NCBI GenBank assembly: GCA_965644295.1
Contig: CBFFRP010000378.1
Coordinates: 62,001-126,000 of the forward strand
Direction of reading: 5' to 3'
DNA length: 64,000 nucleotides
Source of the DNA: Paraphysomonas bandaiensis
Taxonomy: Eukaryota; Protista; Chrysophyceae
A model generated the notes under the pieces. That model ran no database searches and was not told the DNA's origin. It saw nothing but the letters and a program-made list of their open reading frames with translations. The position numbers were made by a program, and so were the translations under genes. The number at the start of each line of letters is the position of its first letter. Within the stretch, counting starts at the first letter, position 1. This document shows, piece by piece, positions 29,551 to 61,700 of this stretch.

Positions 29551-29662
29551 GAATATTGAGACAACAATTATGTGTATTACAGCCGTAGTTATACTGCAGT
29601 TATATAGAGTATTTTTGATTCATTTTATTCCCGAAAAATGAGATGCTAACTGCTGATACGAT
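29551..29662 (+). repeat. Partial second copy of the MITE internal sequence
   Basis: AATATTGAG.CAA.AATTATGTGTATT..AGCCGTAGTT..CCGAAAAAT.AGATGCT.ACTGC.GATACGAT aligns with 28985-29095. Confidence 0.85.
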
Positions 29663-29949
29663 GTTGTTGCTTGAGGAGTAGGAGTGTGTGTAACATGTAT
29701 GCTATGGTGTTATGCACTTGTTTAGGCTTAACCGAAGTGCTTGGTGCCAACGATCTTGTTGCACTGGCGGTGTTACCTGCGTGGTGGTACTTGGCGGGTG
29801 TCACTTACTGAGCATTAGGTTATTGCCTAGAGTAGTCAGCATAACAATACATTGTGTATTACACTTGTGTGTTTGTGTGGTATACCCGTACTGCGAGCCG
29901 TGATTTCGGTTGTCAAACCGGGTTACGTTACAGTGCTGACTGGGCTACA

Positions 29950-31055
29950 TTTTATAGCAGGAAAGCTGTTGACATGGCAGTCGATTTTACAAACTACAGT
30001 ATTGACATCTTCCATTGTAAAAGTAAATATCAGGCAAAGTGGCTTTCGGAGTGTTGTCCAAACTGCACGTGATTTAACTTTTTGTCAATCAAACTGCGAA
30101 GATATATGTGAGAAGCATCAACAGGGGCATTCAGAAGAGCGTCAGAAAGGGTTGACTGTAAAAGATCGTGACGATGTAAGATTGTATGTAAAATGACTGA
30201 TAGTTGAGATAACTTGAACATAAAGTCGGGGAAATACCAAAACCTGGTAAAATGTATCAAACCTGGTGAAATTTTGGATGATGGTCGGAAAAGGGTATAA
30301 TTATGCACAATAAGTAGCTATAAAGATAATAACAGCGTGAAGAATATTATTTATAATATTTTGATTACTTTCGAACATATTACTTCAATATTACAGCAAA
30401 AAACGTCACCGACTACACGTATATGGCACAAACTATTCCGTCATAAGTATCAAGCTATTCTTTGCACTACACCCCACCACTACGTCGACGTTTTCCGGTG
30501 ACAACATTCTCAGATGAGAGCGCGCTTTGATCCACCAATTCTGTTGCAAACTCTGTTGCTATCTCCCATTGCTGTTTTTTAGTACGTTTCTTTGAAGAAG
30601 TGACTGTATAATAAATAAAACAACTAATATTGTACTGTATTACATTAACATACGAACCTTTCTTGTGCCTCAATTTACTAAGAGCAAATAATAAGTGATA
30701 TTGATTATGGTTTATAAATTTGCAGCTTTAAGTATTAATCAAGGTTCTGTTACTTAATTCTCCTTCTCATTCTCCTACCAACTTCTAACAGTAGGCATAT
30801 GTTCACCGATTGCTTTGAAGTTCGATTTTTGGTGGTTACGTATCTGTCAGTCTCGTTGCTGTGTGGAAAGATGTTGATAAAGAATGTGAAAAGAAAATTT
30901 CAGAGAATGATAAGATGTGATACTCACAATAATATTAATTAATTGATAGTGCTGTAATCAGACGTAAAAATAACAAACTTTATATTATTTTATTAAAAGT
31001 TGATGTGATGACCAAACCTGGTAAAACGGTCAAAACCTGGTGAAATTTTGAAAAT
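29950..31055. mobile_element. Degenerate transposon-like relic with about 40-bp direct repeats at 30237 and 31011
   Basis: AAACCTGGTAAAA....TCAAA(A)CCTGGTGAAATTTTG occurs twice about 775 bp apart, flanking a decayed intron-containing fragment (..QWEIATEFATELVDQSALSSENVVTGKRRR). A broken plus-strand frame IDIFHCKSKYQAKWLSECCP lies upstream. Confidence 0.35.
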
Positions 31056-31151
31056 GTCAATTTAAGATGAGTTTTTGATGTGTTTGGCAATAAATAATGT
31101 AGTAGGGTTAAGGAGAAGATGTTTAGAGACATTTAATAAATTTTACATTAG

Positions 31152-34100
31152 TTACAGGTCAAATTCTACACTGCCGTCTCGCAACAAAGCATTAATCACA
31201 GATATACCACCCTCACGAGCAATGCTGATACTGTTATCGGCGTTCGCAGCAAGTTTACCAAGTACCCTTGCCGCCATAATCTTGCTATCTGCACTGTCCT
31301 CACGCAACAATGCAATCAATGCAGATATACCACCCTCACGAGCTATGCTAATACTGTTATCGGCATTTGAAGCAAGTTTACCAAGTACCCTTGCCGCCAT
31401 AATCTTGCCCTCAGCACTGCCCTCACGCAACAAAGCAATCAATGCAGATATACCGCCCTCACGAGCTATGCTAATACTGTTATCGGCGTTCGCAGCAAGG
31501 TTACCAAGTACCCTTGCCGCAATCAACTTGCCCTCAGCACTTCCCTCACGCAACAAAGCAATCAATGCAGATATACCGCCCTCACGAGCTATGATACTAC
31601 TGTTATCGGTGTTTGAAGCAAGTTTATAAAGTGCCGCTGCCACCTTAATCTTGCCCTCTGCACTGCCCTCACGCAACAAAGCAATCAATGCAGATATACC
31701 ACCCTCACGACCTATGCTGATACTGTAATCGGCGTTTGAAGCAAGCTCATAAAGTACCGCTGCCGCCAGGCGCTGGTGTACTGTACTGCGCTCACGCAAC
31801 AATGCAATCAATGCAGATATACCGCCCTCACGACCTATGCTGATACTGTTATCGGCGTTTGAAGCAAGTTTCTCAAGTACCACTGCCACTTTAATCTTGC
31901 TCTCAGCAATGCCCTCACGCAACAAAGCAATCAATGCAGATATATCTTCCTCACGAGCTATACTGTTACTGTAATCGGCGTTTGAAGCAAGTTTCTCAAG
32001 TGCCGCTGCTGCCTTAATCTTGCCCTCAGCACTGCCCTCACGCAACAAAGCAATCAATGCAGATATACCGCCCTCACGAGCTATGCTAATACTGTTCCCG
32101 GCGTTCGCAGCAAGTTTCTCAAGTGCCGCTGCCGCCTTAATCTTGCACTCTGCACTGCCCTTACGCAACAATGTAATCAATGCAGATATACCGTCCTCAC
32201 GAGCTATGGTAATACTGTTATCAGCGTTTGCAGCAAGGCCGCCAAGTATTGCTGCCGCCATATGCTGGTGTACTGAACTGCCCTCACGCAACAAAGCAAT
32301 CAATGCAGATATATCTTCCTCACGAGCTATGCTAAATCTTTTATCGACGTGTAAAGCAAGATTGCCAAGTACCCTTGCCGCCATTGTGTAAACTTGAGCA
32401 CTGCCCTCACGCAACAAAGCAATCAATGCAGATATACCGCCCTCACGAGCTATGCTGATACTGTTATCGGCGTTTGAAGCAAGTCTACCAAGTACTGCTG
32501 CCGCCATACACTCGTCGTAATAACTGCCCTCACGCAACAAAGCAATCAATGCAGATATACCGCCCTCACGAGCTATGCTAATACTGTTTTCGGCGTTCGC
32601 AGCAAGTTTCTCAAGTACCGCTGCCGCCTTAATCTTGCCCTCTGCGCTGCCCTCACGCAACAAAGCAATCAATGCAGATATACCGCCCTCATGAGCTATG
32701 CTGATACTGTTATCGGCGTTCGCAGCAAGTTTACCAAGTACCCTTGCCGCAATCAACTTGCCCTCAGCACTGCCCTCACGCAACAATGCAATCAATGCAG
32801 ATATACCGCCCTCACGAGCTATGCTGATACTGTTATCGGTGTTTGAAGCAAGTTTATAAAGTGCCGCTGCAACCTTAATCTTGCCATCTGCACTGCCCTC
32901 ACGCAACAAAGCAATCAATGCAGATATACCACCCTCACGAGCTATGCGGATACTGTAATCGGCGTTTGAAGCAAGCTCATAAAGTACCGCTGCCGCCAGG
33001 CGCTGGTGTACTGTACTGCGCTCACGCAACAATGCAATCAATGCAGATATACCGCCCTCACGACCTATGCTGATACTGTTATCGGCGTTTGAAGCAAGTT
33101 TCTCAAGTACCACTGCCACTTTAATCTTGCTCTCAGCAATGCCCTCACGCAACAAAGCAATCAATGCAGATATATCTTCCTCACGAGCTATGCTGTTACT
33201 GTAATCGGCGTTTGAAGCAAGTTTCTCAAGTGCCGCTGCTGCCTTAATCTTGCCCTCAGCACTGCCCTCACGCAACAAAGCAATCAATGCAGATATACCG
33301 CCCTCACGAGCTATGCTAATACTGTTCCCGGCGTTCGCAGCAAGTTTCTCAAGTGCCGCTGCCGCCTTAATCTTGCACTCTGCACTGCCCTTACGCAACA
33401 ATGTAATCAATGCAGATATACCGTCCTCACGAGCTATGGTAATACTGTTATCAGCGTTTGCAGCAAGGCCGCCAAGTATTGCTGCCGCCATACGCTGGTG
33501 TACTGTACTGCCCTCACGCAACAAAGCAATCAATGCAGATATATCTTCCTCACGAGCTATGCTAAATCTTTTATCGACGTGTAAAGCAAGATTGCCAAGT
33601 ACCCTTGCCGCCATTGTGTAAACTTGAGCACTGCCCTCACGCAACAAAGCAATCAATGCAGATATACCGCCCTCACGAGCTATGCTAATACTGTTATCGG
33701 CGTTTGAAGCAAGTCTACCAAGTACTGCTGCCGCCATACACTCGTCGTAATAACTGCCCTCACGCAACAATGCAATCAGTGCAGATATACCACCCTCACG
33801 AGCTATGCTAATACTGTTATCGGCGTTCGAAGCAAGCTCATAAAGCACCTCTGCAGCCAGAATCTTACCCTCTGCAATGTCCTCACGCAACAAAGCAATC
33901 AATGCAGATATACCGCCCTCATGAGCTATGCTGATACTGTTATCGGCGTTCGCAGCAAGTTTACCAAGTACCCTTGCCGCCTTAATCTTACCCTCAGCAC
34001 TGCCCTCACGCAACAAAGCAATCAATGCAGATATATCGTCCTCAAGAGCTATGATGACAACATTATGGGTGTTGAAAGCAAGTTTCTCAAGTAGCGCTGT

Positions 34101-37100
34101 CGCCTTTATCTTTATCTCTGCACTGCCCTCACGCAACAAATCAATCAATGCAGATATACCGCCCTCAAGAGCTATTCTATCTCTGTTAAAGCCGCTACGA
34201 GCAAGCTTATCAAGTACATTAGCCGCAGTATACTGAACCGTTGCACTTTCCTCGCGTAACAAAGTAATCAATGTGGATATATCTTCCTCACGAGCTATTC
34301 TATCTCTGTTATTGACCATTGCAGCAAGGTTGCCAAGTACCTCTGCTGCTTTAACTTTGCCCTCTCGACTGCCCTCACGCAACAAAGCAATCAATGCAGA
34401 TACACCGCCCTGATAACCAATGCTGATACTGTTACCGGCGTTTGAAGCAAGTTTACCAAGTACCGCTGCCGCCTTAATCTTACCCTCTGCGCTGTCCAGA
34501 TGCAACAAAGCAATCAATGCAGATATACTGCCCTCACGAGATATACTAATTCTATACTCGGTGTTTAAAGCTAAGCCACCAAGTACTGGTGCCGTCATAC
34601 ACACGTCTTCACAACTGCGCTTACGTAGCAAAGCAATCAATGCAGATATACCGCCCTCACGAGCTATGCTAACTCTGTTATCGGCGTTTGAAGCAAGTTT
34701 ACCAAGTACCGCTGCCGCCTTAGTCTTGCCCTCTCCACTGCCCTCTCGCAACAAAGCAATCAATGCAGATATACCGCCCTCACGAGCTATGCTAATACTG
34801 TTATCGGCGTTTGAAGCAAGTTTCTCAAGTACCGCTGCCGCCTTAATCTTGCCCTCTGCACTGCCCTCACGCAACAAAGCAATCAATGCAGATATACCGC
34901 CCCCACGAGCAATTCCGTTATCTGCGTTAGAAGCAAACTTATGAAGTACTGCTGCAGCCGTAATCTTGCCCTCAGCATTGTCCAGACGCAACAAAGCAAT
35001 CAATGCAGATATACCGCCCTCACTATCTATGCGGGTACTGTAAGCTACGTTTGAAGAAATATTATCAAGTACTGCCACCCTGCCCTCGTCTCCATAACTA
35101 AGCTTATGTAAAAAAGCAATCAATGTAGATATATCACCCTCACGAGCTATGCTGATACTGTTACCGGCGTTCGCAGCAAGTTTACCAAGTACCCTTGCCG
35201 CCATAATCTTGCCATCTGCACTGCCCTCACGCAACAAAGCAATCAATGCAGATATACCACCCTCACGAGCTATGCTAATACCGTTATCGGCGTTTGAAGC
35301 AAGTTGAACAAGTACCCTTGCCGCCATAATCTTGCCCTCCGCACTGCCCTCACGCAACAAAGCAATCAATACAGATATATCTTCCTCTCGAGCTATGCTA
35401 ACTCTGCTATTCCCATTGCCAAAAAGTTTACGAAGTACCGCTGCCGCCTCAGCACTGCCCTCACGCAACAAAGCAATCAAAGCAGATATACCACCCTCAC
35501 GAACTATGCTGTTACTGTAATTGTCTGTCCCAGAATAAATATTAAGTACTGCAGCAGCCAAACGCTGGTCTCCTTCGCTGCCCTCACGCAACAAAGCAAT
35601 CAATGCAGATATATCACCCTCATAAGCTATTCGGATACTGTTACCGGCATTTGAAGCAAGTTTACCAAGTACCGCTGCCGCCTTAATCTTACCCTCTGCA
35701 CTGCCCTCACGCAGCAAAGCAATCAATGCAGATATACCACCCTCACGAACTATGCGGATACTGTGGTCACAGCTTCGGGTAAATTTATCAAGTACCGCTG
35801 CCGCAATAATCTTGCCCTCTGCACTACACTCACGCAACAATGCAATCAATGCAGATATACCGCCCTCACGAGTTATGTTAACTCTGTTATCCTCTTTGGC
35901 AGCAAGTTTACCAAGTGCCGCTGCCGCCTTAGTCTTGCCCTCTGCACTGCCCTTACGCAACAAAGCAATCAATGCAGATATACCGCCCTCACGAGCAATG
36001 CAAACTCTGTTATCGGCGTTCGCAGCAAGTTTACCAAGTACCGCTGCCACCTTAATCTTACCCTCTGCACTGCCCTTACGCAACAAAGCAATCAATGCAG
36101 ATATACCGCCCTCACGAGCTATGCTGATACTGTTATCGGCATTTGAAGCAAGCTCATAAAGTACCTCTGTAGCCATAATCTTGCCATCAGCACTGCCCTC
36201 ACGCAACAATGCAATCAATGCAGATATACCGCCCTCACGAGCTATGCTAACTTTGTTATCGGCGTTTGAAGCTAGTTTATAAAGTACCACTGCTGCTTTA
36301 ATCTTACCCTCTACACTGCCCTCACGCAACAAAGCAATCAATGCAGATATACCGCCCTCGCGAGCTATGCTAATACTGTAATCGGCGTTCGCAGCAAATT
36401 TTTCAAGTACCGCTGCCGCCTTAACCCTACCCTCTGCAATACCCTCACGCAACAAAGCAATCAATGCAGATATACCACCCTCACGAGCTATGCTAATACT
36501 GACATCGTTGATTGAAACAAGTTTCTCAATTACTGCTGCAGCCTTAACCTTACACTCTGCACTGCCCTCACGCAACAAAGCTATCAACACATATACACCG
36601 CCATCACGAGCTATGCGGATACTGTTATCGGCGTTCGCAGCAAGTTCATCAAGTACTCCTGCCAACAACATCTTATCTTCTGCATAGCCTTCACCCAACA
36701 AACCTATCAATGCAGATATACCGCCCTCACGACCTATGCTAACACTGTTATCGGCGTTCGCAGCAAGTTTACCAAGTACCACTGCCGCCTTAATCTTACC
36801 CTCAGCACTGCCCTCACGCAACAATGCAATCAATGCAGATATACCGCCCTCACGAGCTATGCTGACAATGTTCACGGCGTTTGAAGCAAGTTTATCAAGT
36901 ACCGCTGTCGCCATAACCTTACCCTCTGCACTGCCCTCACGCAATAAAGCAATCAATGCAGATATATCATCCTCACGACCAATCCTGATACTGTTATCGG
37001 CGTATAAAGCAAGTTTGCAAAGTACTGCTGCCGAAATCAATTTGCCCTCTGCACTGCCCTTACGCAACAAAGCAATCAATGCAGATATACCGCCCTCACG

Positions 37101-38318
37101 AGCTATGCTGTTACTGTTAACAGTATTTGAAGCAAGCTCATAAAGTACCTCTGCCGCCTTAATCTTGCCCTCTACACTGCCCTCACGCAACAAAGCAATC
37201 AATGCAGATGTACCGCCCTCACGAGCTATGCTGATACTGTTATCGGCGTTTGAAGCAAGCTCATAAAGTATCATTGCCACCTTCATCTTACCCACCGCAG
37301 TGCCCTCTCGCAACAACGCAATCAATGCAGATATACCACCCTCACGACCTATGCTAATACTGTTTTCGGCGTTCGCAGCAAGTTTCTGAAGTACCGCTGC
37401 CGCCTTAATCTTGCCCTCTGCACTGCCCTCACGCAACAAAGCAATCAATGCAGATATACCGCCCTCACGAGCTATGCTAATACTGTTATCGGCGTTTGAA
37501 GCAAGTTTCTCAAGTACCGCTGCCGCCTTAATCTTGCCCTCAGCACTGCCCTCACGCAACAAAGCAATCAATGCAGATATACCGCCCTCACGACCAATGC
37601 TAACTCTGTTATCGGCGTTTGCAGCAAGCTCATAAAGTATCACTGCTGCCTTAATCTTGCCCTCTGCACTGCCCTCACGCAGCAAAGCTATCGACCGAAT
37701 AATTGCATCATCTGCTTTTGTTGTTCTATATGTTGTCTCATCTGAATGTCGATCATGATTATATCCAGAAGAAGCATTTGTTCCTTCACCAGTTAATGGA
37801 GGGACTGGAAGAGCGTGTTGCTGACTGTCGTTTACAGTCATTCGACTCTGTAACTGTATAATATGTGAGTGAATTTGCTCCTTTTCACTACAAAGTGTTT
37901 CATATTCCAAATCTAAACGTGAACTACTCGACAGTAATTCATTTAATCGTTCTTGTGTGTCTTTAATCTGTTGTTTGATTACTTGTGAGTTATGTCTGAT
38001 CTCTCCCATTTGTGTTGATATTTCTTCCTTTTTTCTTATATTTATAGCAATTTTTGATTGAATTTGTTCGAAGTCTTCAGTCTCACATAATGAACGCTTA
38101 TGATTGGCTGATAAAGAAGTATGACGACAAAAGTCAATTACTGTGAAATTTCTTGGAATTTTATTAATATCAGGTGAAAATCGTTGTGAACATATGGGGC
38201 ATTTATTTGCGCTCAGTTGACTTAAACATGTGATGCAAAGGGTGTGTCCACAGGGTAAGCTTCGAGGATCATACTCTCCCCCATCAGTGTAATCATAACT
38301 ACAACTTGGACACTCCAT
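31152..38318 (-). CDS. RING finger (C3HC4) / coiled-coil / about 53 tandem 41-aa armadillo repeats; putative E3 ubiquitin ligase, intronless
   Basis: CPSC..PRSLPCGHTLCITC..CPIC then RNFTV, heptad-rich region (about aa 80-160), then 123-bp repeats of consensus IAREGGISALIALLREGSAEGKIKAAAVLxKLAxNADNSIS. Uninterrupted 7167-bp ORF. Confidence 0.95.
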   Translation of the reverse strand: MECPSCSYDYTDGGEYDPRSLPCGHTLCITCLSQLSANKCPICSQRFSPDINKIPRNFTVIDFCRHTSLSANHKRSLCETEDFEQIQSKIAINIRKKEEISTQMGEIRHNSQVIKQQIKDTQERLNELLSSSSRLDLEYETLCSEKEQIHSHIIQLQSRMTVNDSQQHALPVPPLTGEGTNASSGYNHDRHSDETTYRTTKADDAIIRSIALLREGSAEGKIKAAVILYELAANADNRVSIGREGGISALIALLREGSAEGKIKAAAVLEKLASNADNSISIAREGGISALIALLREGSAEGKIKAAAVLQKLAANAENSISIGREGGISALIALLREGTAVGKMKVAMILYELASNADNSISIAREGGTSALIALLREGSVEGKIKAAEVLYELASNTVNSNSIAREGGISALIALLRKGSAEGKLISAAVLCKLALYADNSIRIGREDDISALIALLREGSAEGKVMATAVLDKLASNAVNIVSIAREGGISALIALLREGSAEGKIKAAVVLGKLAANADNSVSIGREGGISALIGLLGEGYAEDKMLLAGVLDELAANADNSIRIARDGGVYVLIALLREGSAECKVKAAAVIEKLVSINDVSISIAREGGISALIALLREGIAEGRVKAAAVLEKFAANADYSISIAREGGISALIALLREGSVEGKIKAAVVLYKLASNADNKVSIAREGGISALIALLREGSADGKIMATEVLYELASNADNSISIAREGGISALIALLRKGSAEGKIKVAAVLGKLAANADNRVCIAREGGISALIALLRKGSAEGKTKAAAALGKLAAKEDNRVNITREGGISALIALLRECSAEGKIIAAAVLDKFTRSCDHSIRIVREGGISALIALLREGSAEGKIKAAAVLGKLASNAGNSIRIAYEGDISALIALLREGSEGDQRLAAAVLNIYSGTDNYSNSIVREGGISALIALLREGSAEAAAVLRKLFGNGNSRVSIAREEDISVLIALLREGSAEGKIMAARVLVQLASNADNGISIAREGGISALIALLREGSADGKIMAARVLGKLAANAGNSISIAREGDISTLIAFLHKLSYGDEGRVAVLDNISSNVAYSTRIDSEGGISALIALLRLDNAEGKITAAAVLHKFASNADNGIARGGGISALIALLREGSAEGKIKAAAVLEKLASNADNSISIAREGGISALIALLREGSGEGKTKAAAVLGKLASNADNRVSIAREGGISALIALLRKRSCEDVCMTAPVLGGLALNTEYRISISREGSISALIALLHLDSAEGKIKAAAVLGKLASNAGNSISIGYQGGVSALIALLREGSREGKVKAAEVLGNLAAMVNNRDRIAREEDISTLITLLREESATVQYTAANVLDKLARSGFNRDRIALEGGISALIDLLREGSAEIKIKATALLEKLAFNTHNVVIIALEDDISALIALLREGSAEGKIKAARVLGKLAANADNSISIAHEGGISALIALLREDIAEGKILAAEVLYELASNADNSISIAREGGISALIALLREGSYYDECMAAAVLGRLASNADNSISIAREGGISALIALLREGSAQVYTMAARVLGNLALHVDKRFSIAREEDISALIALLREGSTVHQRMAAAILGGLAANADNSITIAREDGISALITLLRKGSAECKIKAAAALEKLAANAGNSISIAREGGISALIALLREGSAEGKIKAAAALEKLASNADYSNSIAREEDISALIALLREGIAESKIKVAVVLEKLASNADNSISIGREGGISALIALLRERSTVHQRLAAAVLYELASNADYSIRIAREGGISALIALLREGSADGKIKVAAALYKLASNTDNSISIAREGGISALIALLREGSAEGKLIAARVLGKLAANADNSISIAHEGGISALIALLREGSAEGKIKAAAVLEKLAANAENSISIAREGGISALIALLREGSYYDECMAAAVLGRLASNADNSISIAREGGISALIALLREGSAQVYTMAARVLGNLALHVDKRFSIAREEDISALIALLREGSSVHQHMAAAILGGLAANADNSITIAREDGISALITLLRKGSAECKIKAAAALEKLAANAGNSISIAREGGISALIALLREGSAEGKIKAAAALEKLASNADYSNSIAREEDISALIALLREGIAESKIKVAVVLEKLASNADNSISIGREGGISALIALLRERSTVHQRLAAAVLYELASNADYSISIGREGGISALIALLREGSAEGKIKVAAALYKLASNTDNSSIIAREGGISALIALLREGSAEGKLIAARVLGNLAANADNSISIAREGGISALIALLREGSAEGKIMAARVLGKLASNADNSISIAREGGISALIALLREDSADSKIMAARVLGKLAANADNSISIAREGGISVINALLRDGSVEFDL

Positions 38319-38822
38319 ATCAGATCAGATACAGAAATGAAGAGTGAGCTGAGAGGTACAGTAATATCAACCCACCTCCTGAAGTCTGAATGTGACACCA
38401 GATCTATTCTGTCCTAATTTTTCCAACTGACTGTGGAGGATATCCACTCAGATATACAGACATACTGTATGTATGTGTATAACTACAACTGTAGGGTAAA
38501 GTATTTATCATCATCAGCAGACTGGCGTGATGGAAACTCATATCACATATCACACGTACTCTATCGTAATACTCTCCTTCGTACACGTACTCCGATATTC
38601 CCCTATCGTACTCAGTTACCCGTACTTAAGTACATACGTACCTAACTACTCTTCCTCGTACTTCAGGACCCACCACATAGGTACACCATCATATATTTCT
38701 CAATCTAACCTTCTCCTGCAACATATATGGGGTCTAAACTTCCACAATATCATATCTTTTATATATATTCTACCTACAACTCACATTTCTAGTAAAATGA
38801 CGCATATCAGAATCGTCACACC

Positions 38823-39116
38823 TGCCCCATATTGACATCGTAACTAATTACTGCGTGAGGCCATCTAGTGGGTGCGGCTGAGTGCTGCTGCGATTGCTCG
38901 CCTCTGCCTATGTACACATTGCTTAGTTCAGCGGTTCCCCACCCGGGGTCTCACTGCATATTCAGCGCTGAATACCGTGTGATAGTGATGTAGCTAGTTG
39001 GGTTCAGTAGGTAGCTAGCAAATAACATATGACATATGGGACTTAAATCAAGTATTAGTTAGGTACCCACCCGGTCCCCATCCGAATCTACCTAAGTACG
39101 CGCTCAGAATGGGGCA
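38823..39116. mobile_element. Second, more decayed member of the CCCCATT-terminus MITE family
   Basis: Right end GCGCTCAGAATGGGGCA resembles CCCTCGGAATGGGGCA at 12966-12981. Left end TGCCCCATATTGA is an imperfect inverse. Confidence 0.45.
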
Positions 39117-39376: not shown

Positions 39377-40306
39377 TCAGTTAGGAATCTGACTGGTATC
39401 GATTGTTCGGAGATAAGGTTTGACTGCCTCAAAACTGCCAAACATTTCCATTGCAGCTTCATCAGTTACAGATGGTAGGATGACACATCTATCTCCTACA
39501 TTCCAGTTGACAGGTGTTGCGAGCTTCTTGGCATGAGTAAGTTGAAGGGAGTCAATCACGCGCAATATCTCATCGAAATTCCTTCCCGTGCTTGGGGGAT
39601 AAGTAATAATAAGCTTAATCTTTTTGTCTGGACCAATCACAAAGACAGAACGGACAGTAGCTGGTGCACCTATGACCTCTTCATCATCCATCAGCATACC
39701 ATACGTTGTCACGATACTCCGGTCTCGGTCAGCGATGATCGGGAAGTTGACAGCACAGCCGCCGACTTCTTTAATATCCTCCGACCAAGCAATATCTTCT
39801 TCCACAGAGTCACATGAAATAGCACACACCTACATAAGATGTCACCCATACAATACCGTAAGTGAATATAGACATATGACAGGCATATAGACGAGAGACA
39901 TACAGACGAGAGGCATACAGACAACAGGCATACAGACGAGAGGTATAGAGATGAGAGACATAGAGATGAGAGACATAAAGACAACAGGCATAGAGACGAG
40001 AGGCATAGCTCACCTTCACTCCTCGTCGATCAAACTCAGGTTTAAGACGGGCCATTCTCCCCAATTCAGTGGTACATACAGGTGTGAATGCTTTGGGATG
40101 AGAGCAGAGAATAGCCCATTGTGAACCAATCCAATCATGGAAATTCATGGGCCCGTCTGTTGTTTCTGTATATAGTGATATACTATTAATACATACATAC
40201 ATACATACATACATACATACACACACACACAGAGAGAGAGTGAGATACCTGCTTCAAAATTCGGTGCCACATCTCCTAGTCTTAATCCACGTGCAAAAGT
40301 AGCCAT
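39377..40306 (-). CDS. PRDX6: 1-Cys peroxiredoxin (Prx6 family); 3 exons
   Basis: [19 protein letters not shown]|[37 protein letters not shown]|[44 protein letters not shown]. Confidence 0.97.
39865..40007. repeat. 15-bp minisatellite (GACGAGAGGCATACA-like) in peroxiredoxin intron 2
   Basis: About 9 degenerate 15-nt units. Confidence 0.85.
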
Positions 40307-55727: not shown

Positions 55728-58700
55728 TCAAGTCGGAACGCTGGTTGGCTGTCCAGTAGGTTGACCCGTAGGTTGCCCTGTAGGTTGTCCACTTGGCTGT
55801 ACTGTTGGTTGACCAGTAGGTTGTCCTGTAGGCTGTCCCGTAGGCTGACCACTTGGCTCACCGGTGGGCTGTCCAGTTGGACTAGTCGGAACACTAGTTG
55901 GCTGTCCTGACGGTACTACTGTGGGTTGTCCAGTAGGTTGACCCGTAGGTTGCCCTGTAGGTTGTCCACTTGGCTGAACTGTTGGTTGACCAGTAGGTTG
56001 TCCAGTAGGCTGTCCCGTAGGCTGACCACTTGGCTCACCGGTGGGCTGTCCAGTTGGGCTAGTCGGAACACTGGTTGGCTGGCCTGACGGTACTACTGTG
56101 GGTTGTCCAGTAGGTTGACCCGTAGGTTGCCCTGTAGGTTGTCCACTTGGCTGAACTGTTGGTTGACCAGTAGGTTGTCCTGTAGGCTGTCCCGTAGGCT
56201 GACCACTTGGCTCACCGGTGGGCTGTCCAGTTGGACTAGTCGGAACACTAGTTGGCTGTCCTGACGGTACTACTGTGGGTTGTCCAGTAGGTTGACCCGT
56301 AGGTTGCCCTGTAGGTTGTCCACTTGGCTGAACTGTTGGTTGACCAGTAGGTTGTCCAGTAGGCTGTCCCGTAGGCTGACCACTTGGCTCACCGGTGGGC
56401 TGTCCAGTTGGGCTAGTCGGAACACTGGTTGGCTGGCCTGACGGTACTACTGTGGGTTGTCCAGTAGGTTGACCCGTAGGTTGCCCTGTAGGTTGTCCAC
56501 TTGGCTGAACTGTTGGTTGACCAGTAGGTTGTCCTGTAGGCTGTCCCGTAGGCTGACCACTTGGCTCACCGGTGGGCTGTCCAGTTGGACTAGTCGGAAC
56601 ACTGGTTGGCTGGCCTGACGGTACTACTGTGGGTTGTCCAGTAGGTTGACCCGTAGGTTGCCCTGTAGGTTGTCCACTTGGCTGAACTGTTGGTTGACCA
56701 GTAGGTTGTCCAGTAGGCTGTCCCGTAGGCTGACCACTTGGCGCACCGGTGGGCTGTCCAGTTGGGCTAGTCGGAACACTGGTTGGCTGGCCTGACGGTA
56801 CTACTGTGGGTTGTCCAGTAGGTTGACCCGTAGGTTGCCCTGTAGGTTGTCCACTTGGCTGAACTGTTGGTTGACCAGTAGGTTGTCCAGTAGGCTGTCC
56901 CGTAGGCTGACCACTTGGCTCACCGGTGGGCTGTCCAGTTGGGCTAGTCGGAACACTAGTTGGCTGGCCTGACGGTACTACTGTGGGTTGTCCAGTAGGT
57001 TGGCCCGTAGGTTGCCCTGTAGGTTGTCCACTTGGCTGAACTGTTGGTTGACCAGTAGGTTGACCAGTAGGCTGTCCCGTAGGCTGACCACTTGGCTCAC
57101 CGGTGGGCTGTCCAGTTGGACTAGTCGGAACACTGGTTGGCTGGCCTGACGGTACTACTGTAGGTTGTCCAGTAGGTTGACCCGTAGGTTGCCCTGTAGG
57201 TTGTCCACTTGGCTGAACTGTTGGTTGACCAGTAGGTTGTCCAGTAGGCTGTCCCGTAGGCTGACCACTTGGCGCACCGGTGGGCTGTCCAGTTGGGCTA
57301 GTCGGAACACTGGTTGGCTGGCCTGACGGTACTACTGTGGGTTGTCCAGTAGGTTGACCCGTAGGTTGCCCTGTAGGTTGTCCACTTGGCTGAACTGTTG
57401 GTTGACCAGTAGGTTGTCCAGTAGGCTGTCCCGTAGGCTGACCACTTGGCTCACCGGTGGGCTGTCCAGTTGGGCTAGTCGGAACACTAGTTGGCTGGCC
57501 TGACGGTACTACTGTGGGTTGTCCAGTAGGTTGGCCCGTAGGTTGCCCTGTAGGTTGTCCACTTGGCTGAACTGTTGGTTGACCAGTAGGTTGACCAGTA
57601 GGCTGTCCCGTAGGCTGACCACTTGGCTCACCGGTGGGCTGTCCAGTTGGACTAGTCGGAACACTGGTTGGCTGGCCTGACGGTACTACTGTAGGTTGTC
57701 CAGTAGGTTGACCCGTAGGTTGCCCTGTAGGTTGTCCACTTGGCTGAACTGTTGGTTGACCAGTAGGTTGTCCAGTAGGCTGTCCCGTAGGCTGACCACT
57801 TGGCTCACCGGTGGGCTGTCCAGTTGGACTAGTCGGAACACTGGTTGGCTGGCCTGACGGTACTACTGTGGGTTGTCCAGTAGGTTGACCCGTAGGTTGC
57901 CCTGTAGGTTGTCCACTTGGCTGAACTGTTGGTTGACCAGTAGGTTGTCCAGTAGGCTGTCCAGTAGGCTGACCACTTGGCGCACCGGTGGGCTGTCCAG
58001 TTGGGCTAGTCGGAACACTGGTTGGCTGGCCTGACGGTACTACTGTGGGTTGTCCAGTAGGTTGACCCGTAGGTTGCCCTGTAGGTTGTCCACTTGGCTG
58101 AACTGTTGGTTGACCAGTAGGTTGTCCTGTAGGCTGTCCCGTAGGCTGACCACTTGGCTCACCGGTGGGCTGTCCAGTTGGGCTAGTCGGAACACTGGTT
58201 GGCTGGCCTGACGGTACTACTGTGGGTTGTCCAGTAGGTTGACCCGTAGGTTGCCCTGTAGGTTGTCCACTTGGCTGAACTGTTGGTTGACCAGTAGGTT
58301 GTCCAGTAGGCTGTCCCGTAGGCTGACCACTTGGCTCACCGGTGGGCTGTCCAGTTGGACTAGTCGGAACACTGGTTGGCTGGCCTGACGGTACTACTGT
58401 GGGTTGTCCAGTAGGTTGACCCGTAGGTTGCCCTGTAGGTTGTCCACTTGGCTGAACTGTTGGTTGACCAGTAGGTTGTCCAGTAGGCTGTCCCGTAGGC
58501 TGACCACTTGGCTCACCGGTGGGCTGTCCAGTTGGACTAGTCGGAACACTGGTTGGCTGGCCTGACGGTACTACTGTGGGTTGTCCAGTAGGTTGACCCG
58601 TAGGTTGCCCTGTAGGTTGTCCACTTGGCTGTACTGTTGGTTGACCAGTAGGTTGTCCTGTAGGCTGTCCCGTAGGCTGACCACTTGGCTCACCGGTGGG

Positions 58701-61700
58701 CTGTCCAGTTGGACTAGTCGGAACACTGGTTGGCTGGCCTGACGGTACTACTGTGGGTTGTCCAGTAGGTTGACCCGTAGGTTGCCCTGTAGGTTGTCCA
58801 CTTGGCTGAACTGTTGGTTGACCAGTAGGTTGTCCAGTAGGCTGTCCAGTAGGCTGACCACTTGGCGCACCGGTGGGCTGTCCAGTTGGGCTAGTCGGAA
58901 CACTGGTTGGCTGGCCTGACGGTACTACTGTGGGTTGTCCAGTAGGTTGACCCGTAGGTTGCCCTGTAGGTTGTCCACTTGGCTGAACTGTTGGTTGACC
59001 AGTAGGTTGTCCAGTAGGCTGTCCCGTAGGCTGACCACTTGGCTCACCGGTGGGCTGTCCAGTTGGGCTAGTCGGAACACTAGTTGGCTGTCCTGACGGT
59101 ACTACTGTGGGTTGTCCAGTAGGTTGACCCGTAGGTTGCCCTGTAGGTTGTCCACTTGGCTGTACTGTTGGTTGACCAGTAGGTTGTCCAGTAGGCTGTC
59201 CCGTAGGCTGACCACTTGGCGCACCGGTGGGCTGTCCAGTTGGACTAGTCGGAACACTGGTTGGCTGGCCTGACGGTACTACTGTGGGTTGTCCAGTAGG
59301 TTGACCCGTAGGTTGCCCTGTAGGTTGTCCACTTGGCTGAACTGTTGGTTGACCAGTAGGTTGTCCAGTAGGCTGTCCCGTAGGCTGACCACTTGGCGCA
59401 CCGGTGGGCTGTCCAGTTGGACTAGTCGGAACACTGGTTGGCTGGCCTGACGGTACTACTGTGGGTTGTCCAGTAGGTTGACCCGTAGGTTGCCCTGTAG
59501 GTTGTCCACTTGGCTGAACTGTTGGTTGACCAGTAGGTTGTCCTGTAGGCTGTCCCGTAGGCTGACCTGTTGGCTCACCGGTGGGCTGTCCAGTTGGGCT
59601 AGTCGGAACACTGGTTGGCTGGCCTGACGGTACTACTGTGGGTTGTCCAGTAGGTTGACCCGTAGGTTGCCCTGTAGGTTGTCCACTTGGCTGAACTGTT
59701 GGTTGACCAGTAGGTTGTCCTGTAGGCTGTCCCGTAGGCTGACCACTTGGCTCACCGGTGGGCTGTCCAGTTGGACTAGTCGGAACACTAGATGGCTGCC
59801 CTGACGGTACTACTGTGGGTTGTCCAGTAGGTTGACCCGTAGGTTGCCCTGTAGGTTGCCCACTTGGCTGAACTGTTGGTTGACCAGTAGGTTGTCCAGT
59901 AGGCTGTCCCGTAGGCTGACCACTTGGCTCACCGGTGGGCTGTCCAGTTGGACTAGTCGGAACACTGGTTGGCTGTCCTGTAGGTTGACCCGTAGGTTGA
60001 CCAGTAGGCTGACCCGTAGGCTGTCCCGTAGGCTGACCACTTGGCTCACCGGTGGGCTGTCCAGTTGGGCTAGTCGGAACGCTGGTTGGCTGGCCTGACG
60101 GTACTACTGTGGGCTGTCCAGTGGGTTGACACGTAGGTTGCCCTGTAGGTTGTCCACTTGGCTGAACTGTTGGTTGACCAGTAGGTTGTCCTGTAGGCTG
60201 TCCCGTAGGCTGACCACTTGGCTCACCGGTGGGCTGTCCAGTTGGACTAGTCGGAACACTAGTTGGCTGTCCTGTTGGTACTACTGTGGGTTGTCCAGTA
60301 GGTTGACCCGTAGGTTGCCCTGTAGGTTGTCCACTTGGCTGAACTGTTGGTTGACCAGTAGGTTGTCCTGTAGGCTGTCCCGTAGGCTGACTACTTGGCT
60401 CACCGGTGGGCTGTCCAGTTGGACTAGTCGGAACACTAGTTGGCTGGCCTGACGGTACTACTGTGGGTTGTCCAGTAGGTTGACCCGTAGGTTGCCCTGT
60501 AGGTTGTCCACTTGGCTGAACTGTTGGTTGACCAGTAGGTTGTCCTGTAGGCTGTCCCGTAGGCTGACCACTTGGCTCACCGGTGGGCTGTCCAGTTGGA
60601 CTAGTCGGAACACTTGTGGGCTGGCCTGACGGTACTACTGTGGGTTGTCCAGTAGGTTGACCCGTAGGTTGCCCTGTAGGTTGTCCACTTGGCTGAACTG
60701 TTGGTTGACCAGTAGGTTGTCCAGTAGGCTGTCCAGTAGGCTGACCACTTGGCTCACCGGTGGGCTGTCCAGTTGGACTAGTCGGAACACTGGTGGGCTG
60801 GCCTGACGGTACTACTGTGGGTTGTCCAGTAGGTTGCCCTGTAGGTTGTCCACTTGGCTGACCTGTTGGTTGACCTGTCGGTTCACACGATGGCACAGAA
60901 CTTGGCTTGAATGTTGGAACTTTACTTGGGATAGCGGTTGGCTGCCCTGAAGGTATTGTACTTGGGTTTCCACTGGGGGTACAACTTGGTTGTCCTGTCG
61001 GCTGTCCACTTGGTATACACGATGGTATACCGGACGGGATATGACTAGGTAAAAATGAAGGCATCGCGCTAGGTGAACCAGTAGGCTCACCACTTGGTAA
61101 CGAAGTGGGAACACGTGTAGGTTGACTACTTGGGGTTAGACTGGGTACTGACGAGGGGACCCCAGTTGGTTGGCTGCTCGGTTGAGTGCTGGGATTAGAT
61201 GACGGGGAAGCCGAAGGTTGGCCTGTAGGAACCACAGTAGGCTCTCCACTCGGCTCTGCACTGGGTTGTCCACTAGGCTGCCCTGAAGGTTCACCCGAAG
61301 GTATGGTGCTAGGCAGTGCACTAGGCATCGCACTAGGTAGTGTTGTCGGTTGACCAGATGGAATACACGATGGCTGCCCAGTTGGATCAGATGTCGGTTG
61401 AACGCTGGGTGCTCCTGACGGAAACGCAGATGGTATGCCACTGGGCTCACCAGACGGAATACATGTTGGCTGCCCACTTGGCTCACCCGATGGTTGACCA
61501 CTTGGCAAACCGGAAGGTATAACAGTGGGTTGGCCGGAAGGCATCCCTGAAGGAACTGCACTTGGCTGTCCTGAGGGAAAACATGTTGGCAAAGACGTCG
61601 GCTGACCGCTGGGGGATGTTGGTATACTGGAGGGCTGCCCGGATGGCACACAAGAAGGCAATCCGCTCGGCTGACTTGTAGGAACACAAGTAGGCTGACC

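Follow-up and report, generated by a model that had tools for sequence, protein, structure and literature searches.

A RING-coiled-coil protein with 53 tandem armadillo units in the flagellate Paraphysomonas bandaiensis

A single gene on the minus strand of the window analyzed here (a 64,000-nucleotide stretch of a Paraphysomonas bandaiensis contig) encodes a RING finger, a coiled coil and 53 tandem armadillo (ARM) units. The gene is real, unusual and lineage-specific; it is not a demonstrated new system. It probably specifies a lineage-restricted RING-coiled-coil-ARM-array ligase, belonging to a three-gene family of this marine, chrysophyte-type flagellate, whose array has grown by tandem duplication and carries a near-neutral surface. 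Judged from its sequence, the gene is functional, since its 7.1-kb open reading frame (ORF) is intact, the ARM scaffold is constrained and the RING omega is low (0.23-0.33 in comparisons between paralogues). The tests reported below do not show the role of a fast-diversifying immune sensor.

Gene structure and domain organization

The coding sequence (31152..38318, minus strand) is complete and lies in a single exon of 2388 codons followed by a stop. As had been proposed in the initial annotation, this 7.1-kb frame is uninterrupted and its few short units (19, 22 and 23) result from in-frame deletions; in the other frames across the same interval, the longest ORF does not exceed 184 aa. The transcript contig of a paralogue carries 65 nt of leader ahead of the equivalent ATG, and this leader aligns to positions 38319-38382 of the window. 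From the N- to the C-terminus, the protein is composed of a C3HC4 RING, a helix of 88 residues with regular heptads, a disordered linker, the 53 ARM units and a partial cap. The succession of RING, coiled coil and giant ARM array that had been read from the sequence was thus recovered by Pfam, AlphaFold and the heptad register.

The RING finger (aa 3-43; 38190..38312, minus strand) was matched above the cut-offs by the Pfam models zf-RING_UBOX (PF13445, 1.1e-7), zf-RING_5 (PF14634, 1.5e-7) and zf-C3HC4 (PF00097, 6e-5). Its ligands are C3, C6, C23, H25, C28, C31, C40 and C43, in the canonical eight-ligand spacing C-X2-C-X(9-39)-C-X(1-3)-H-X(2-3)-C-X2-C-X(4-48)-C-X2-C, and all eight are identical across the three paralogues. 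The U-box model of Pfam did not match this domain, in which the eight Cys/His ligands are present instead. At position 5, in the first zinc loop, the 53-unit copy contains a Ser where the paralogues contain the Ile of C-P-I-C. This position is usually in contact with the E2, so that the 53-unit copy may be a weak ligase.

The coiled-coil helix (aa 80-167; 37818..38081, minus strand) was predicted by AlphaFold as one helix with a pLDDT of 75-88. It is spanned by one unbroken heptad register in which 5-6 of 8 a/d positions are hydrophobic; shuffled heptads gave 3.67±0.4 such positions, and none of the 500 shuffles matched the helix. It is followed by a low-complexity linker (aa 168-203; 37710..37817, minus strand), with a pLDDT below 50 over residues 168-198. 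Residues 44-79, which connect the RING to the coiled coil, include only one Cys, and no zf-B_box match was obtained with Pfam at E<=0.1 in the whole protein. The same domain was absent from 10 of the best remote RING-plus-helix relatives, those that were scanned with Pfam. The protein had been called TRIM-like; as a statement of membership this was rejected, the RING and the coiled coil being present and the B-box missing.

The armadillo array

The array (aa 204-2369; 31212..37709, minus strand) contains 53 tandem units of 41 aa (123 bp), in agreement with the initial estimate of about 53. Tandem Repeats Finder (TRF) reported a period of 123 bp, 53.2 copies and 80% matches over 31165-37692, and Pfam matched Arm (PF00514, 3.3e-35) and ARM_PUB (8.2e-35). 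When the units were set in register, three were found to be shortened in frame: unit 19 (37 aa; 35385..35495), by a 12-bp deletion at the start of helix 3, and units 22 (40 aa) and 23 (39 aa; together 34902..35138). A partial 54th unit of 19 aa (31155..31211) forms a C-terminal cap, and a similar cap is found in the 12-unit paralogue after its frameshift.

The AlphaFold model of units 24-35 (pLDDT 87.8) is an ARM superhelix with three helices per unit, at unit positions 2-12, 15-28 and 32-40, in keeping with the armadillo definition of ~42-aa repeats whose three helices stack into a right-handed superhelix. In the Foldseek comparison, Vac8 (TM 0.8) and beta-catenin (TM 0.65-0.69) were both matched with a probability of 1.0, ODAD2 was also matched, and an engineered ARM protein ranked third.

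Amino-acid entropy is 0-0.9 bits at unit codons 3-14 (ARM helix 2), which are nearly fixed, and 1.1-2.2 bits at codons 15-20, 23, 26-27 and 30-37, so that the variation of the array is concentrated in helix 1 and, within helix 3, on its exposed side. From the helix placement in the AlphaFold model and the alignment with Pfam Arm, the variable positions 16, 19/20, 23, 26/27 and 30 are predicted to be a single exposed stripe on the groove helix, which the initial annotation had described as a hypervariable binding helix. In the ungapped Pfam Arm match, positions 23 and 27 fall on the Trp and Asn of the consensus helix 3; these importin-type positions are occupied here by Ala or a variable residue and by Lys or a variable residue, respectively.

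Furthermore, the helix-2 segment had been described as near-invariant even at synonymous sites. Its conservation at the amino-acid level is borne out by the entropy values, and the 35-mer quoted for it is found at 46 places when up to 3 mismatches are allowed (15 exact; none in shuffles). The synonymous part of the claim needs qualification: synonymous diversity is low throughout the unit (mean ~0.14), and that of the conserved block is not significantly below the rest (0.097 vs 0.160; Mann-Whitney p=0.20), being lower only than that of codons 15-21 (p=0.018).

Paralogues, relatives and locus

The genome contains two paralogues, C338 (715 aa, 12 units) and C527 (1893 aa, 41 units, with 2-unit and 9-unit periodicity in its array). 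Both are represented in the transcript assemblies (P0015, P0175); no transcript specific to the 53-unit copy was found. The assemblers demonstrably collapse the genes of this family and produce chimeras. An exhaustive search of 1.84 billion representative proteins returned, below E=1e-30, only the transcript of the paralogue. The best remote relatives of the RING plus helix show 25-31% identity, the named sources being the chrysophyte Mallomonas, a glaucophyte and a shrimp. In the literature searched, no description was found of a RING and coiled-coil head joined to 53 consensus-like repeats.

Duplication, selection and recombination among the units

Units 33-41 (32688..33794, minus strand) and 43-51 (31458..32564, minus strand) are the two near-identical copies of an internal duplication with a period of 10 units (1230 bp). 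They are separated by 19 differences in 1107 bp (98.3% identity; 0-5 nt per unit). The peptides and cassettes quoted in the initial annotation are all present in the protein; their recurrence, which had been ascribed to recombined modules, is in large part explained by this recent 10-unit (1.23 kb) duplication. Of the 19 differences, 16 are alleles already found in other units (expected, 51%; p=0.0026), and this conversion-like signal was seen only between the duplicated blocks.

In the codon analysis, which relies on a single tree and is compromised by between-unit conversion, the scaffold was found under constraint (alpha 1, beta 0.25, p=1e-4). For the exposed helix-3 sites, a set picked after the fact, fixing the synonymous rate gave an omega of ~1.5 (p=0.0014), and under this setting site 30 held up under Bonferroni correction. 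When the synonymous rate was free, the same sites gave alpha 2, beta 1.5 and an omega of 0.75 (not significant), and not one site survived multiple-test correction. On the strength of the fixed-rate values, some positive selection may act on the exposed helix-3 sites.

These results bear on the reading given in the initial annotation, that of an immune-type sensor which diversifies: the helix-3 cassettes would be specificity modules, shuffled via the conserved block and kept under diversifying selection, and the protein would ubiquitinate viral or bacterial targets. The location of the variation, centred on the groove face and including the equivalents of the ligand-contacting Trp and Asn, is what such a sensor would display, and the fixed-rate omega of the exposed helix-3 sites points in the same direction. 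However, omega exceeds 1 only under that setting: it is 0.77 among the units overall and ~0.5 in the cassette (codons 15-21; alpha 2, beta 1), where beta is below alpha (p=0.02).

In the same way, positions 15-20 are replaced wholesale in about 10 units, which form 3-4 cassette families, similar replacements occur at this place in the units of C338, and the two paralogues vary at the same positions as the 53-unit copy (rho 0.79 and 0.47), all of which suits a sensor; but no divergent cassette common to the paralogues was found. The greatly unequal array lengths (53, 41 and 12 units) and the conversion-like differences between the duplicated blocks would also agree with module shuffling. Breakpoints within the conserved block are nevertheless not indicated by the PHI test among the units (p=0.07-0.15, not significant), incompatibility is independent of distance, and the units, which differ by a mean of 23/123 nt, are related to their consensus in a star-like manner and not as mosaics. 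Moreover, the changes accumulated since the block duplication (10 non-synonymous and 9 synonymous) correspond to an omega of ~0.4, the neighbouring genes are housekeeping genes and no allelic contig for this locus was found in the assembly. The sensor reading is considered unlikely.

Discussion

A structural or scaffolding solenoid, for instance cytoskeletal or flagellar, in which the ARM rod is functional and the RING is secondary or degenerate in the 53-unit copy, was also considered. The host is a flagellate with many giant ARM proteins in its genome, and the closest solved sequences are those of the axonemal ARM proteins ODAD2/ARMC4 (1.2e-20) and PF16, then Vac8; however, the ODAD2 matches, at 21% identity, reflect generic ARM similarity. 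A near-neutral surface is compatible with a rod devoid of a specific ligand, and the Ile-to-Ser change in the first RING loop would suit a secondary RING, but the ligands and most residues of this domain are under purifying selection in the three paralogues, and we consider the rod improbable.

More speculatively, and by analogy with designed armadillo proteins, the three genes could be protist-specific modular recognise-and-ubiquitinate receptors, each ARM unit using its exposed helix-3 residues to read about two residues of a target chain in extended form and the array being rewritten by duplication, deletion and short-patch conversion so as to track viral or prey proteins. This is quite unlikely; if true, it would amount to a TRIM-like restriction system based on a programmable ARM code.

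Finally, it is very unlikely that the array, notably at the 10-unit duplicate, was expanded or collapsed during assembly and that the real gene is different: two 1.1-kb blocks at 98.3% identity and transcript assemblers that collapse this family and build chimeras invite the suspicion, but the divergence among units makes most of the array uniquely placeable, the blocks differ at 19 sites with the frame intact throughout, and the locus lies inside a contig of more than 400 kb with unique flanks.

The preferred reading remains that of a lineage-restricted ligase. In this scheme, the coiled coil would pair two chains and the RING would recruit a ubiquitin-charged E2, while the very long ARM superhelix would serve as a binding platform, with substrates or a polymeric partner lying along the helix-3 groove. 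The array would have grown by tandem duplication, sometimes of one unit and sometimes of a block of several units, as exemplified by the 10-unit duplication, presumably through unequal crossover. After this growth, purifying selection would have preserved helix 2 and the helix-3 core, which form the buried scaffold, and the exposed helix-3 and helix-1 positions would be drifting at an approximately neutral rate, with occasional short-patch gene conversion between units.

Ligases combining a RING or U-box with an armadillo domain are already well known from plants; a RING-coiled-coil head on a 53-repeat array is unusual, and it has no close relative outside the organism's own family among the 1.84 billion representatives. 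The gene offers a clean natural case of the growth and divergence of a repeat protein, in which a block was duplicated, the core stayed fixed and the surface was left free. Should the groove residues prove to turn over between strains, the gene would become a candidate for an innate-immune ligase of a free-living protist.

Comparison with known systems

The nearest known design is that of the plant U-box armadillo E3 ligases (PUB-ARM: PUB12/13, SPL11, ARC1, SAUL1), in which an N-terminal E2-recruiting RING-type fold is likewise combined with a C-terminal substrate-binding ARM array, as reflected by the ARM_PUB match; the ligase function of the 53-unit protein is a prediction. It differs from them by a zinc-binding C3HC4 RING instead of a U-box (RING-like, without zinc ligands), by the 88-residue coiled coil that separates the RING from the array and by its 53 near-identical units, whereas plant PUBs contain roughly 5-12 diverged repeats. 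No orthology to PUB-ARM proteins was detectable in the exhaustive search.

With TRIM/RBCC proteins, it shares the succession of RING, long coiled coil and variable recognition domain, as well as the occurrence in small paralogous families. However, TRIM proteins contain one or two B-boxes after the RING and before the coiled coil, and an ARM array, the C-terminal domain here, is not known as one of the domains that usually end a TRIM protein. The fold is common to the 53-unit array and the canonical ARM proteins (Vac8, beta-catenin, importin-alpha, ODAD2/ARMC4), but the latter contain 10-12 diverged repeats and no RING.

TAL-effector-type arrays provide an analogy only: as in the ARM array, their tandem units are near-identical in DNA, vary mainly at a few specificity positions and evolve by unit duplication and recombination. 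Fold, ligand and kingdom are different, and the ARM array varies at about 15 positions per unit, without a clear selection signature. Finally, engineered ARM proteins (dArmRP, of the PDB 4rv1 type) resemble the array in that near-identical units combine a hydrophobic scaffold that is fixed with groove residues that vary. The 53-unit array, by contrast, is natural, far longer and joined to a predicted ligase module, and it represents a natural counterpart to these designed armadillo binders.

Architecture of the encoded protein

The gene at window 31152-38318 (minus strand) was read as a single unbroken ORF of 2388 codons, the longest ORF in the other frames of the region being at most 184 aa. 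Tandem Repeats Finder detected a repeat with a period of 123 bp, 53.2 copies and 80% matches at window 31165-37692, and both the intact frame and the repeat array claimed in the initial annotation were thereby borne out. In the in-register layout of the protein, a RING finger (residues 3-43) is followed by a helical segment (residues 80-167), a linker (residues 168-203), an array of 53 armadillo (ARM) units of 41 residues (residues 204-2369) and, C-terminal to this array, a partial unit of 19 residues which forms a cap. Units 19, 22 and 23 comprise 37, 40 and 39 residues, respectively, and therefore carry in-frame deletions, as had been stated. Furthermore, 46 copies of the 35-mer taken from the repeat were counted when up to three mismatches were allowed, versus 0 in shuffles, and all the quoted peptides were found in the protein. 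The initial observation on this gene is confirmed.

The head of the protein was recognized by the Pfam zinc-RING models zf-RING_UBOX (1.1e-7) and zf-RING_5 (1.5e-7). Its eight zinc ligands have the canonical C3HC4 spacing and are unchanged across two paralogues located on contigs C338 and C527 of the same assembly; the RING part of the N-terminal AlphaFold model has a pLDDT of about 45-57. In this type of model, residues 80-167 form one helix (pLDDT 75-88), after which the linker is disordered. The helix keeps one continuous heptad register in which hydrophobic residues fill a mean of 5.6 of the 8 a/d positions (3.7±0.4 in shuffles), and a predicted coiled coil, by which chains would pair, is therefore a reasonable reading.

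The first zinc loop of the RING reads C-P-S-C in the window copy, with serine encoded by codon 5 (window 38304-38306), the residue being isoleucine (C-P-I-C) in both paralogues and in the transcript P0015. In RING ligases, this position usually touches the E2 and, judging from this residue, the window copy may be a weaker ligase.

The array matched the Pfam Arm model (3.3e-35) and the ARM region of plant PUB proteins (8.2e-35). A fragment of 12 units (units 24-35) was modelled with a pLDDT of 87.8; each unit consists of three helices, which span positions 2-12, 15-28 and 32-40. When this model was submitted to Foldseek, Vac8 (TM 0.8), beta-catenin (about 0.67), the axonemal ODAD2 and an engineered ARM protein were retrieved; by sequence, the nearest solved chains were ODAD2/ARMC4 (1.2e-20), then Vac8 and beta-catenin.

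The variability of the units was placed by means of the ungapped register of Pfam Arm, the limits of the helices and their periodicity. Codons 3-14, which correspond to ARM helix 2, are near-fixed among units, and entropy reaches 1.1-2.2 bits at unit codons 15-20, 23, 26-27 and 30-37. Pfam Arm aligns with the unit without gaps (40 residues, profile positions 1-40), and positions 23 and 27 of the unit thereby fall on the consensus Trp and Asn positions, whose residues contact the ligand in importin-type repeats. The variable helix-3 positions 16, 19/20, 23, 26/27 and 30 recur at intervals of 3-4 residues and so form a single exposed stripe, the conserved positions 18, 21, 22, 25, 28 and 29 being presumably buried. 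Entropy, Pfam register and stripe together support the proposal that the variation lies on the groove helix. In addition, the variable unit positions are common to both paralogues (Spearman 0.79 and 0.47).

Paralogues and transcripts

The search of the assembly (62.5 Mb, 669 contigs) for paralogues, suggested in the initial annotation, yielded the two genes with the same head. The C338 paralogue (715 aa, 12 units) has a head 81% identical to that of the window copy, and the C527 paralogue (L006:2653-8334 in the C527 region; 1893 aa, 41 units) one that is 69% identical. The corresponding head dS values from the window gene are 0.16 and 0.48, with a RING omega (dN/dS) of 0.23-0.33 between paralogues. 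In the C338 gene, the last full unit is frameshifted (L005:5560-5700 in the C338 region), the rest of the unit and a family-type C-terminal cap being encoded in the next frame. Since the same premature end is found in the transcript contig L008, this frameshift is not an assembly error.

C527 is built of two alternating unit types (2-unit period) with a 9-unit higher-order period. In contrast to the window copy, many of its units retain the canonical Asn at position 27. The C338 units are mostly nearest to consensus-like units of the window gene. Positional orthology of units across the paralogues was rejected, as it holds only for units 1-2. No divergent cassette, the cassettes being small recurring helix-3 segments, was found in common with the paralogues.

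P0015, a transcript-like contig from JGI, corresponds to the C338 gene. The MMETSP transcript P0175 is a chimera in which the head and units of C338 are joined to the tail of C527 within the conserved helix-2 block. Transcription of both paralogues follows from these matches; for the window copy, the transcript searches yielded no specific transcript. Assemblers jump between paralogues in the conserved block, and the chimeric nature of P0175 makes transcriptome-derived protein sets unreliable for this family.

Selection on the units

The conserved block had been described as near-invariant even at synonymous sites. When strictly synonymous diversity was measured on unit pairs sharing the same residue, values of 0.097 for helix 2, 0.266 for codons 15-21, 0.115 for codons 22-29, 0.157 for codons 30-37 and 0.098 for the unit junction were obtained. 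Helix 2 was lower only in comparison with codons 15-21 (p=0.018); against the remainder of the unit, the difference was not significant (p=0.20), and its special conservation at the DNA level was rejected on this basis. Between the helix-2 consensus of the window copy and that of C527, 0 synonymous differences were counted across same-residue codons; about 2.4 would be expected, which by our rough estimate (p about 0.09) is only suggestive. The unit is young or homogenised as a whole, without a distinct status for helix 2.

Pairwise Nei-Gojobori dN/dS came to 0.72-0.76 over all codons; by segment, it was 0.39 in helix 2, 0.56-0.60 in codons 15-21, 1.43-1.49 in codons 22-29 and 0.57 in codons 30-37. 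Maximum-likelihood fitting of GY94 to 41 non-redundant units gave an omega of 0.772, in a codon analysis whose single-tree assumption is broken by conversion between units. In our own site-wise analysis on the GY94-fit tree, in which neither the synonymous (alpha) nor the non-synonymous (beta) rate was constrained, helix 2 (alpha 1, beta 0.25, p=1e-4) and codons 15-21 (alpha 2, beta 1, p=0.02) deviated in the purifying direction, and the exposed helix-3 sites (alpha 2, beta 1.5) did not deviate significantly. At sites 24, 32 and 39, beta exceeded alpha (p about 0.01), none of the three surviving correction for 41 tests. In a second run, the synonymous rate was fixed at the array average, as site models usually assume; omega was then about 1.5 at the exposed helix-3 sites (p=0.0014), a set picked partly post hoc, and site 30 reached p=7e-4.

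The weak signal of positive selection is model-dependent, exposed helix 3 exceeding 1 only with the synonymous rate fixed, and the diversifying selection put forward earlier is not clearly supported. The honest reading is that the ARM scaffold is under purifying selection and that its surface evolves at about the neutral rate.

Duplication and probable conversion within the array

Units 33-41 and 43-51 are related by a recent block duplication with a period of 1230 bp, with 19 differing sites over 1107 bp (0-5 per unit). The recurring cassettes of the initial annotation are present as peptides, but several of them are due to this one block duplication. Shuffling of cassettes through the conserved block received no confirmation: the PHI-type test was not significant (p=0.07-0.15), and the incompatibility of informative site pairs (about 59%) was independent of distance. 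The divergent cassettes form three or four families of two to four units each, which unit duplication explains as well as shuffling does; units 26, 29 and 33-35 are among the carriers of cassettes. The duplicated blocks show one positive sign of conversion. Of their 19 differences, which comprise 10 non-synonymous and 9 synonymous changes, 16 use an allele that other units already carry (expectation 51%, p=0.0026).

For most units, the nearest units are 2 and 24, both consensus-like, and the pattern is star-like. Outside the duplicated block, the greater similarity of neighbouring units that frequent local unequal crossover would produce is absent (22.9 differences at lag 1 versus a mean of 23.3, only lag 10 standing out). 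An adenine-specific, DGR-like origin of the divergent cassettes and an origin by frameshift pairs were likewise dismissed, since substitutions occur at all four bases and no shifted-frame relation was seen.

Distribution and genomic context

Exact look-up of the three family proteins gave no match, and word searches with the 715-aa paralogue returned only generic ARM proteins of at most 36% identity (Phytophthora kinase-ARM, one Paraphysomonas protein). A metagenome scan yielded two irrelevant matches at 30%. When the 205-residue head was used as the query of an exhaustive phmmer search, only P0015 fell below 1e-30; the remaining matches were generic RING or RING-plus-helix proteins of 25-31% identity, one of them from the chrysophyte Mallomonas. 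Giant ARM proteins are common in the P. bandaiensis genome; at C66:349274-359983, a 3772-aa open frame contains many ARM repeats that are distant relatives of the array (24-38% identity).

The neighbouring ORFs are of housekeeping type (peroxiredoxin, pantothenate kinase, PUB-domain protein, Tweety-like protein). No allelic contig for the locus was found in the assembly, where the matches were dispersed repeats only, and the gene flanks are unique except for short dispersed repeats. These lie at window 38822-39116, 29662-29934 and 30223-30679 (about 290, 270 and 460 bp), have dozens of copies each, spread over many contigs with 80-95% identity, and resemble SINE or MITE elements. The 158 bp directly 3' of the stop codon (window 30994-31151) match C237:53807-53966 at 86% identity, beside a copy of one of these dispersed repeats; the segment may be what remains of a further family member, or it may belong to a composite element.

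Elsewhere in the window, 15/60-bp tandem repeats and an (ATAC)n microsatellite (39881-40008 and 40189-40229) lie directly upstream of the peroxiredoxin-like ORF (39377-39829). A 2724-aa ORF at 55728-63902 (minus strand), which reaches the window edge, occupies an island of 54-58% GC and consists mostly of Pfam PT repeats (47 stretches).

Relation to known ligase families

The reading of the gene as an immune receptor gained no support from the tests run and is considered improbable. The window protein belongs both to the RING finger proteins and to the ARM-repeat proteins. The proposed TRIM-like identity was abandoned because no B-box was detected by Pfam in the window protein at E<=0.1; none was present either among the scanned remote RING and RING-plus-helix relatives. 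As it has a RING instead of a U-box, it is not a PUB. No paper describing the combination of RING, coiled coil and ARM array was found in the literature search. In its predicted working mode, the protein is closest to the PUB-ARM ligases, to which layout it adds a TRIM-style coiled coil, and its array resembles those of consensus-designed armadillo proteins.
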